Shown: positions 23,040 through 26,260, counted from the first letter of the stretch. The stretch is 64,000 nt of DNA from Epithemia pelagica (GCA_946965045.2 OX337238.1:620001-684000); one strand, 5' to 3'. The notes: a model not told the origin generated them from the sequence alone. Translations and numbers: made by a program.

Positions 23040-26000
23040 CTAGGCAACGAACATGGGTGGTTTGTAGGCGCTTGAAGCGGAATCCTCTCGGGAAATGATC
23101 GGTGCCAATTCAATCTGGTTATCCTTCTTTGCGGCATTATTCTCCTCCATATTGAGAAAGGGGGCTTGGTACCGCATCTCGAGGCCCAGCACGACCCAGG
23201 CAAAACTGCACACTGGAATGAGACTGGATCCCAGACCCCATTCGCAGGTCGACTCTCGGCACGTCTGGCCCACGTAAAAGAGCAAGGTGAGAGCCTGACA
23301 GATGGCAGCGAAAAACGCAATCCAGGATGCCACAGCCCAGGTCGTGGGCGATAAAATCCCGGTAAACAAAAAGTACCACAACACGCCCAAGCTAAAGGAA
23401 CCCGCCACAAACGCCGAAACATGGAAAATTCGGGCGACAATGGGGGAGTTTTCTTCGTGAAGGTCTTCGTATCGGGCGCAGTACGAATACCCGGCCAGAA
23501 TAGAGTCGGGAGGACTGTATTTCCACAAGCCAACGTGCATATCAAACTCTGCATTGTTTTGTCCCAGCTCCACCGTAATAGAGGCGAGGAAACACGATTC
23601 TCCAATCAGTACGTTGACAACCCATCCCACGATAGTGATGAGACACGCAATAATAACAAGTTGAATCATTCGTTGGCGTCGACTTTGCATGAGACTGCTC
23701 TTTAGTTTCATTGGCTTCTCCTTCTTGGCGAGATCTTCCCGGTCTGCCACTTGTTTCGAAAAAACTGAACGACACGAGTCAGATGACCAGAAGATAACAC
23801 AAGGCAAGAAAAGGGGATACGACCGCACTTACTTTGAGCATCTGTTGTTTTGCTTTTAGAGTGAGACTTTTTCTTGTGATCATGTTTCTTGGATGACTGG
23901 CGAGTACTAAGTTGTTCCTCATCCAAAAATACCTCGGACATATCTTCCGATTTGGGAGGCGCAACGTCACATGCATCAGGTGTCGGAGCCCTCAACTTTT
24001 CAAATTTGGAAGCACCGGGAGTGGTGGAGGACATCTCACAGGACAATGAAGTCTCATCGGAAGGAGTTGAATCCGGTTCATCATATATTTCCTCGGGCGT
24101 TGTATCAGACGGAGTTGTCCTAGCATTTGCTTCGATTGCTCGAACCATCGCCGCAACCCCATGTGGTGTGGAGTCCGTAGACGGAGCTGCTAGTCCCCAC
24201 ATTCGACCACCTTCGTCGTCCAAGTCTGTGTATTCCATGGGAGAATAGTCCGTTGAGTTTGCCAGGGCCTTATCAAAGGCATTGGTTCCAGTATTCGTAG
24301 AACGGGTTGCGTCGCACGAATCCTCGCATGGTTGACTGGCTTGAACCGAAACAGCCGGTACAGTTTGAGCGACCATGGGGAGAGGTTCCGGTTCTGTGCT
24401 CGTGGCGGCAAGCTCCCACATTGGACCACCATCCTCATCCTTGATAGAATCTTGCACAGTCTGAATGTCGGCCATGGACATTGCAGTATCAAAGGCGTTG
24501 GTTCCCGTCAGGGTGGAAGCCGTTCCGTCGCACGATTCTGTGTCTCGAACCCAAGCTGGTCGAGACCTTTCATCTTTCCTGGAATGAGATATCCTTGCAA
24601 CCATTGGAACTGGGGGAGGCTTGCTACTGGAGACAGCCTTCTTCCAGACCCTGCCACCCTCAACGCCATCCATATTGTCGGATGGATTAAAATCGGCGGA
24701 ACGGGTGACAGCTACATCAAATGCATTGGGGTGAGTGGATGCAGTTGCGACACTTCCGCCTTGTTTCTCGTCTCCCCCAACTTGCGGGCTGCTCTTTTTG
24801 TCCTTGGCACTGGACATTTTGGCAACTTCTGGAACTGGAGTGGGCTTTGTGCTGGTCACGGCCGATTCCCACACAGGTCCTCCCGCCACATCGTCCTTGT
24901 TCTCCGACGAGGACTGGAAATCGGTAGATCTTGAAAGAGCAATATCAAATGCGTTCGGCTTCGTCGAGACGGTAGACATGGATGCGACACTGCTGTCTGT
25001 CGGCTTTGACGGGGTTTGAACTTTCGAGGACATCTTGGCGACTTCGGGAACGGGAGTTGGTTTTGCGCTCGTGACGGCCGATTCCCATACGGGTCCTCCA
25101 GTTTCTTCTTCATTGTTCGCTGCTTCATGAGCCTCTTCTGAACGAGACAGAGCAACGTCAAAGGCGTTTGGTTTGGTAGACACCGTCGACATGGTCGCAA
25201 CACTGACATCGGTGGGCTGGAATCGGGAGGCAATCTTGGCCACTTCCGGGACAGGAGCTGGTTTGCTGCTGGAAACGGCCGATTCCCATACCGGCCCTCC
25301 CGCAGCCGCGTCCTCCGTCTCTGTTGGAGGCTGGTAGTCGGCCGAACGAGAAAAGGCAATATCAAAGGCGTTTGTCTTGGTCGAGGCGGTCGAAACCGTG
25401 GCAACACTAATATCCGTGGTTTGGTGGGCCACGCGGCCTTGGGCGGACCTCCTAGCTACTTCCGGAACTGGAGTGGGAATGGTACTCGTGACGGCCGATT
25501 CCCATACGGGTCCTCCCGTTGCCTCCTCTGTGGTATCATCCGTCCCCTGCACGTCTCCCGAACGAGCCAGGGCCACATCAAAGGCATTGGGCTTGGTGGA
25601 GACGGTTGACATGGTGGCGACACTGGCATCCGTTGGAGGTACAACGGGAGTGGTCCTTGTCGCAACGGCGGGTACCGGAGTTGGTTGGCTATCCGCGACG
25701 GCCGATTCCCATACCGGACCTCCCAATGCCTCTTCCAGGGTGGCCGAGGGTTGGAAATCCTCCGAACGTCCAAGGGCAATATCAAAGGCATTGGGTTTGG
25801 TGGAGGCTGTCGACATGGTGACGACACTGGCATCTCCAGGGTGAGGATTGGCGGGTGCTGCCTCGGACTCGTCCATGGGAGTTTCATCCATGGACTCCAA
25901 CCGAGCTCGCTCCGTCTCATCCATATCCATGGGTGCGTCCGGTGCTGGTTTGTCCGCCAATGTGCTGTCCGTTGGGTAAGTCGGTCCAACCGACGGGGAG

Positions 26001-26260
26001 GTTTCATGGGCCAATGTATGAGGAGAAGGAAGCGACGAGGCGTCGCCCCGACTGTTGGTCCCTCGGTGACGATGAAACCTCTCAATGCTTTTCTTGTCCG
26101 TGTTCATTCGAGATCGAATCGTAGTGGCTCGATGAGGACTGGACGACGACTGAGGGGAAGCATCACTGTCGGTTCCCGAGGTTTGTGTATTCATTGTTTC
26201 ACCCTGGTCACCGTCTCCACTACTGGACAAGTGTTTCTCTTCCCATTGAGAGGACGACAT
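23040..26260 (-). CDS. Repeat-containing claudin/PMP22-like tetraspan membrane protein, join(26260..23833,23764..23040), 1050 aa
   Basis: 68-nt phase-1 intron (gtaagt at 23832, ctgac branch, ttcag at 23765) fuses the 850-aa repeat ORF in frame to the 4-TM ORF. The C-terminal domain has GLW in loop 1 and conserved Cys. Confidence 0.8.
24140..25834 (-). repeat. Eight tandem coding repeats of ~68-78 aa (~205-235 bp)
   Basis: Consensus D.SVATMST.STKPNAFD.ALSRS.D.(7-10).GGPVWESAV.S.KP.PVPEVA. Copies 1-5 are near-consensus; 6-8 are diverged but keep NAFD and GG.(V/M)W. Confidence 0.92.

Follow-up and report, generated by a model that had tools for sequence, protein, structure and literature searches.

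A predicted claudin-fold tetraspan of the diatom Epithemia pelagica with a long cytoplasmic arm bearing eight copies of a bipartite motif

The window analyzed here is a 64,000-nt stretch of the Epithemia pelagica genome (GCA_946965045.2 OX337238.1:620001-684000), in whose numbering all positions are given. Sequence comparisons and structural models indicate that the minus strand very probably carries a single two-exon gene, here termed the array gene, whose product of ~1,050 residues couples a claudin-type membrane fold to a long N-terminal arm with eight copies of a short bipartite unit. As a whole, the gene appears best explained as encoding an old, selected, membrane-anchored multivalent docking array, a reading that we favor with modest confidence; the docking function of the array, its partner and its membrane are proposed more tentatively, at somewhat under even confidence. 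The gene is single-copy in the 60.5-Mb, 23-contig assembly, and the GC content is 0.56 in the repeat array (24001-26000) as against 0.46-0.48 in the flanks. Its predicted parts, of which the two exons were searched separately, are as follows:

23833..26260, minus strand: exon 1, which opens with the start codon at 26260 and comprises 809 codons and one further base, encoding the predicted disordered cytoplasmic arm rich in S/T/P/A/D/E
23765..23832, minus strand: predicted intron, 68 nt, phase 1, GTAAGT...GTTCAG
23040..23764, minus strand: exon 2, encoding a basic juxtamembrane linker, the predicted four-helix claudin-fold domain and a C-terminal tail; stop codon at 23040-23042

The relatives of the array protein form a family whose membrane domains are 29-51% identical and which comprises the proteins P0009, P0012, P0003/P0006, P0004 (equivalent to locus L009) and P0005 together with the loci L004-L017. 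An alignment A1 scan of metagenome contigs yielded 14 loci, while alignment A2 contains the eight repeat units and alignment A3 the membrane domain in 14 sequences. Members of the family share a GGxxW motif upstream of the first transmembrane helix (TM1), a Y-x-P-P C-terminus and a long disordered N-terminal arm, and several have a phase-1 intron before the exon encoding the transmembrane part. The arm varies from ~220 to 800 residues and is highly variable in sequence, whereas the membrane domain is conserved.

The eight-repeat array reported in the first-pass annotation was recovered in full, with NAFD motifs at residues 157, 225, 297, 365, 436, 512, 588 and 660, each followed 23-24 residues later by GGxxW. 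The unit can be written as N-A-F-D-x-A then G-G-x-[V/M]-W-x-x-A and recurs every 68-76 residues, corresponding to a DNA period of 201-228 nt. When aligned, the eight 60-61-residue units agree without exception at N, A, F, D, A and at G, G, W, A. Two invariant motifs had been claimed; this holds for NAFD.A but has to be relaxed for GG.VW, as W is preceded by V in six copies but by M in the other two. The units, along with a degenerate remnant that follows them, are located thus:

25655..25834, minus strand: repeat unit 1, residues 143-202
25448..25630, minus strand: repeat unit 2, residues 211-271
25232..25414, minus strand: repeat unit 3, residues 283-343
25031..25210, minus strand: repeat unit 4, residues 351-410
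24815..24997, minus strand: repeat unit 5, residues 422-482
24590..24769, minus strand: repeat unit 6, residues 498-557, with GGR as in the relatives
24362..24541, minus strand: repeat unit 7, residues 574-633
24143..24325, minus strand: repeat unit 8, residues 646-706, with GGRMW at the position of the single GGRxW of distant relatives
23960..24004, minus strand: degenerate ninth half-unit, F-E-K-L-R-A-P-T-P-D-A-C-D-V-A, collinear with F-E-K-L-R-A-D-T-P-D-A-F-D-K-A of P0009

Tandem Repeats Finder reported no tandem repeat at the array because the copies are too diverged; a repeat search and the protein motifs recovered it. A profile of the unit matched only these eight places in the whole genome (E 5e-32 to 8e-27). 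Among 1.84 billion representative proteins, the sole true relative beyond the gene's own product was P0009 (E 4e-10, three stretches), two weaker matches being unrelated low-complexity repeats; likewise, a word search with exon 1 yielded nothing but this product. No Pfam family matched exon 1 at E <= 1 and none of relevance matched P0009, in keeping with the annotation's placement of the repeat outside known families. Nevertheless, P0012 and P0009 contain 1-3 AFD...GGxxW units, and the GGxxW half is found family-wide, so the repeat is not unique to the array gene. In a profile-profile comparison with hhalign, the acidic stretch and GGxxW of the array units aligned with the region around the one GGRxW of distant relatives (E 3.7e-4 in a single comparison); the array is accordingly an amplified version of an element kept throughout the family just upstream of the membrane domain. 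A derivation of P-N-A-F-D from the juxtamembrane motif of the family, R-T-R-S-R-A-D-P-D-A-L, found no support: on exon 1 and on P0012, the scores of a hidden Markov model (HMM) built from that motif did not exceed those on shuffled sequences. By eye, P0009 resembles a bridge between the two motifs, while hhalign aligned the GGxxW part only.

The annotation had also proposed that copies 1-5 are homogenized and that the array is still expanding, a view that the nucleotide comparisons do not support. Units 1-5 are 67-75% identical to each other at the DNA level, with a proportion of synonymous differences (pS) of 0.48-0.71 (synonymous divergence, dS, ~0.8-2.1) and a ratio of nonsynonymous to synonymous divergence (dN/dS) of 0.08-0.27, and units 6-8 are saturated against the remaining units. 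Given the near-saturated synonymous sites and the low dN/dS, the likeness of units 1-5 reflects selection on the protein rather than recent duplication or homogenization. P0007, which is 96% identical and represents another allele or assembly, has the same eight units; P0007/P0008 differ from the array protein by ~3-4% at the protein level, with in-frame insertions of 11 and 3 residues and a deletion of 1 residue that all lie upstream of the array. On this sequence evidence, the array is old and each of its copies is held by purifying selection. Such constraint on eight copies in turn points to sequence-specific recognition by each unit rather than to an effect of bulk charge or length.

Compositionally, S, T, P, A, D, E and G make up 65% of the arm, with Ser and Thr alone accounting for 25%. 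An AlphaFold2 (AF2) model of two consecutive units, for which the alignment consisted of the seven overlapping pairs, had no tertiary contacts (mean predicted local distance difference test score, pLDDT, 55; predicted template-modelling score, pTM, 0.15), its sole structure being a helix of 10-12 residues at each A-F-D-x-A-L-S-R-S segment. The arm hence bears the signature, at the level of the model, of a disordered chain with short recognition elements and not of a folded repeat. Regular-expression scans of the arm of the array protein found no clathrin box, DPF/W, FxDxF, NPF, WxxF, acidic dileucine or PPxY. The succession of helix, acidic stretch and W calls to mind the CA regions that bind Arp2/3 and the W-acidic motifs of kinesin light chain, a likeness to which no claim is attached.

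The C-terminal part contains four hydrophobic helices whose arrangement in the predicted structure is that of the claudin superfamily:

23598..23672, minus strand: TM1, exon-2 residues 31-55, from hydropathy (AF2 helix 18-55)
23442..23597, minus strand: outer loop 1, in which beta strands are predicted; G-L-W-K-Y-S-P, Cys57 and Cys95 count among the residues invariant in the family
23361..23441, minus strand: TM2, residues 108-134, from hydropathy and AF2
23259..23348, minus strand: TM3, residues 139-168, from hydropathy and AF2
23169..23234, minus strand: TM4, residues 177-198, after a short outer loop 2 with conserved Cys168 and Cys173
23043..23168, minus strand: cytoplasmic C-terminal tail (low pLDDT), in which an acidic (I/L)-E-(L/M) patch is conserved and Y-x-P-P lies 4-10 residues before the terminus

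The AF2 model of this part, built on alignment A3, has a mean pLDDT of 78, with values >90 in the helices, and a pTM of 0.69. It places helices at 18-55, 108-134, 139-168 and 177-198 and strands at 60-66, 71-77 and 173-175, the last of these coming from loop 2 to join the predicted beta sheet of loop 1. Within loop 1, G78-L79-W80 is invariant or nearly so in the family, with C57 before it and C95 after it. A Foldseek search of the PDB retrieved TARP gamma-2, -5 and -8 and claudin-3 (probability 1.0, template-modelling score ~0.7). The VIA search, which is independent of Foldseek, returned only claudin-superfamily chains in its top 11 rows (Z 13.3-15.7, 133-175 residues aligned, root-mean-square deviation 2.5-4.4 A), namely LHFPL4/GARLH4, TARP gamma-3/-7/-8, claudin-15/-19/-4, MP20, a designed claudin fold and Cav gamma, while generic four-helix bundles stayed at Z <= 11.3. 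The Atlas model of P0012 similarly matches claudin-4-like, LHFPL and GSG1 clusters. At the sequence level, the Pfam claudin clan (PF00822/PF13903 and clan) gave nothing at E <= 1 for exon 2, P0003, P0004, P0005, P0009, L012, L014 or L017, and a PDB sequence profile search with the membrane domain came back empty. Thus, the predicted structure places the domain in the claudin/PMP22 superfamily by fold, whereas membership at the level of sequence was not recovered.

In the mechanism that we propose, the tetraspan would fix the protein in one membrane with both of its ends in the cytoplasm. The C-terminal 200 residues are predicted to form a four-helix domain of the claudin/PMP22/TARP fold, with a beta sheet in loop 1 and a conserved cysteine pair in each outer loop. 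The N-terminal arm of ~840 residues is predicted to be cytoplasmic and intrinsically disordered, and the bipartite short linear motif that it displays eightfold is made up each time of a helix-prone N-A-F-D-x-A-hydrophobic segment, ~15 mostly acidic residues and G-G-(P/R)-(V/M)-W-x-x-A. The unit appears to be ancestral to the family, being found once in P0012, two to three times in P0009 and, as the GGRxW half, once in distant relatives; it was amplified long ago in the lineage of the array gene, with all copies since retained by purifying selection. The resulting array might serve as a platform for multivalent docking, keeping several molecules of a putative cytosolic partner at the membrane, in line with the multivalent scaffold proposed in the first-pass annotation. 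The sites suggested there, namely silica deposition vesicle, raphe or cell-junction membranes, are speculative candidates for that membrane. A broader and more doubtful proposal is that the family consists of claudin-fold anchors, probably diatom-wide, whose arm recruits a cytosolic machine (a coat, motor or cytoskeletal factor) via the acidic stretch and tryptophan motif, its valency having been raised to eight in this lineage, possibly Epithemia, to give a high-avidity tether at one specialized membrane.

The strongest competitor keeps the spliced gene and sees in the arm a regulatory or spacer tail, for example a heavily phosphorylated one, that tunes the tetraspan, which might then assist a channel or transporter in the manner of the auxiliary subunits TARP, Cav-gamma and LHFPL, or organize membrane domains in the manner of fungal Sur7. 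Its appeal lies in the best structural matches, LHFPL4/GARLH4, TARP gamma and Cav gamma, which are channel auxiliary subunits, in the Ser+Thr content of the arm, and in the variation of the arm beside a conserved membrane domain. However, a common fold does not establish a common function, and both motifs have been kept in eight copies at a dN/dS of ~0.1-0.3 amid synonymous saturation. We therefore regard a purely tuning role of the arm as unlikely, although as the alternative that fares best.

The open reading frame (ORF) at 23708-26260 on the minus strand encodes 850 residues and the downstream open frame at 23040-23828, on the same strand, 262 residues. At 23708-23713 (minus strand) the stop that closes the read-through frame of exon 1 shares bases with the tetraspan ORF's first in-frame ATG (ATGA), such that there is no intergenic space; ORF-based callers consequently give two abutting 'genes' (P0001 of 850 residues and P0002 of 223), and there is no room for a second promoter. 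The predicted intron has the donor AAA/GTAAGT at 23833/23832, the sole consensus-like donor in the splice region, and an acceptor ...GTTCAG ending at 23765, which restores the downstream frame; alternative acceptors are possible at 23750 or 23744 and would alter <=7 linker residues. Joinability alone is not significant, since 52 frame-compatible GT..AG pairs were enumerated in this region.

The one-gene architecture is supported instead by the relatives, not by RNA. P0009 (839 residues) combines the tetraspan with three AFD and two GGxLW motifs in a single protein: residues 582-803 of exon 1 are collinear with its residues 361-592, including F-E-K-L-R-A-x-T-P-D-A, and residues 14-236 of exon 2 align with its residues 617-836 at 37% identity. 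P0012 (686 residues) likewise has one repeat unit and the tetraspan in one frame. In each of L012, L013, L014 and L017, a single uninterrupted ORF of 1024-1087 residues ends in the tetraspan, and its first ~800 residues are S/T-rich and lack a signal peptide; L017 is a genomic contig of 15 kb. Other loci (L006/L008, L007 and L009) have an upstream exon coding for an acidic, S/T-rich region with G-G-R-L-W, and in L006, L007 and L009 a phase-1 intron of 71-98 nt (GTACGT or GTGCGT ... CAG) lies at the equivalent place, 22-24 residues from the TM1 anchor as against 32 in the array gene.

These comparisons make it quite improbable that the locus comprises two genes, one for a soluble 850-residue repeat protein (stop at 23708) and another for an independent 223-residue tetraspan (ATG at 23711). 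Such a reading would account for both ORFs being open and called separately as P0001 and P0002, and would be consistent with a joinable splice pair being expected by chance. It could also draw on the search with exon 2, in which each protein retrieved, namely P0003/P0006 (51% identical), P0004 and P0005, had been called as a stand-alone protein of 232-246 residues. Nevertheless, the L009 contig, from which P0004 comes, has the upstream GGRLW exon and the phase-1 intron, so the stand-alone calls are better seen as artefacts, and the homology with P0003 reaches upstream of the internal Met of the tetraspan ORF. P0003, P0004 and P0005 are stored in a public protein collection as truncated stand-alone tetraspans with the upstream exon missed, P0005 starting inside TM1.

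Regarding topology, no signal peptide was found in the array protein or in any relative; in the former this follows from a hydrophilic N-terminus and an in-frame stop 3 codons upstream of the exon 1 ATG. Nine basic residues precede TM1. Together with the N-in topology of the claudin fold, these features place the N-terminus in the cytoplasm. The first-pass annotation therefore stands up well with respect to the overall architecture: the 68-nt intron that unites the two ORFs agrees with relatives in which both parts share one continuous frame, the claudin/PMP22 fold of the C-terminal part agrees with the AF2 model and the Foldseek and VIA matches, and the cytoplasmic N-terminus without a signal peptide agrees with the charge distribution. 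An extracellular or lumenal array (a mucin-like or silica-associated glycoprotein region), or else a folded repeat domain, is very improbable, for while S/T/P-rich composition is generally known to be common in diatom wall proteins, the former conflicts with the topology just described and the latter with the low scores of the unit-pair model.

Several points weigh against the reading of a spliced, membrane-anchored docking array. The splice and its exact acceptor are predictions from sequence, and the internal Met at 23711 could also start a short tetraspan isoform. The membrane model was built on only 14 sequences. The motif fits no catalogued linear motif among those scanned, and the juxtamembrane-motif HMM did not detect P-N-A-F-D, so that the AFD half can be followed only within the P0009/P0012 branch. 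PolyA RNA-seq exists for the 60-Mbp chromosome-level E. pelagica assembly, in the form of a 280-million-read run that served for its annotation (PMC12377750).

Some further features were noted among the relatives. The arms of the distant members L012, L013, L014 and L017 have short conserved motifs absent from the array protein: L-I-(N/R)-L-D, which fits the clathrin-box pattern, three copies of D-L-D-D-I-L-G-P, and runs of F-S-P-T or P-P-P-S-F-D-D. A further motif missing from the array protein, A-D-P-D-A-L-L (within R-T-R-S-R-A-D-P-D-A-L-L), immediately precedes the membrane domain of distant relatives and fits the acidic dileucine pattern. L010:1400-1660 and L011, which represent the same protein, show a 'continuous' ORF of 724 residues with a hydrophobic, F/Y-rich insert of ~70 residues exactly at the site of the phase-1 intron of the relatives; this insert is probably an unspliced intron that happens to be free of stops. 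Finally, L002:1435-2139 (G000:C5:2180233-2180937) encodes a distant stand-alone tetraspan paralogue of 235 residues with a short N-terminus and many Cys, which hhalign relates to alignment A3 with E 4.6e-5 and a probability of 68%.

In animals, tetraspans with the claudin fold have been studied extensively, both as builders of junctions and as auxiliary subunits of channels. Our literature search found no paper on claudin-like proteins of diatoms, and the sources searched gave no name for any family member. In the array protein, a known fold that matches no curated family is combined with a cytoplasmic motif array that is new, and the family is undescribed. Its members couple the claudin fold with a very long disordered cytoplasmic arm bearing a conserved tryptophan motif, and ORF-style calls split them in public protein collections into 'stand-alone' tetraspans of 223-246 residues. 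The eight-copy version offers an experimental handle, in the form of a 60-residue peptide or an F/W mutant array, for finding the partner and hence the membrane and machinery that are served.

In comparison with the claudin/PMP22/EMP/MP20/TARP-gamma/LHFPL superfamily, the array protein has the same four helices, loop 1 beta sheet and conserved outer-loop cysteines (Z 13-16), along with a G-L-W in loop 1 that may be the counterpart of the claudin GLW. It appears to differ from the classical claudins, in which both cysteines follow GLW (W-GLW-C-C), in that its cysteines flank GLW and a second pair is found in loop 2, and its N-terminus of ~840 residues contrasts with the few residues generally known for claudins and TARPs. 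Classical claudins form paracellular tight-junction strands and have a PDZ-binding Y-V C-terminus. The host of the array protein is a unicellular alga without epithelial junctions; the tails of the family end after Y-x-P-P, some of them in V. Within the family itself, relatives carry one GGxxW motif (P0009 having two GGxxW and three AFD motifs), as against eight full units in the array protein. The arm invites a different set of analogies: compared with the DPF/NPF arrays of Eps15/epsin, the Rubisco-binding arrays of EPYC1/PYCO1 and the algal RBMP proteins, the array protein has another motif sequence and no plastid-targeting signal. By analogy, nonetheless, it may resemble the Eps15/epsin and EPYC1/PYCO1 arrays in having aromatic-centered short motifs in a disordered low-complexity chain, with a copy number that varies by lineage, and the membrane-anchored RBMP proteins in having its motif array tied to a membrane anchor.

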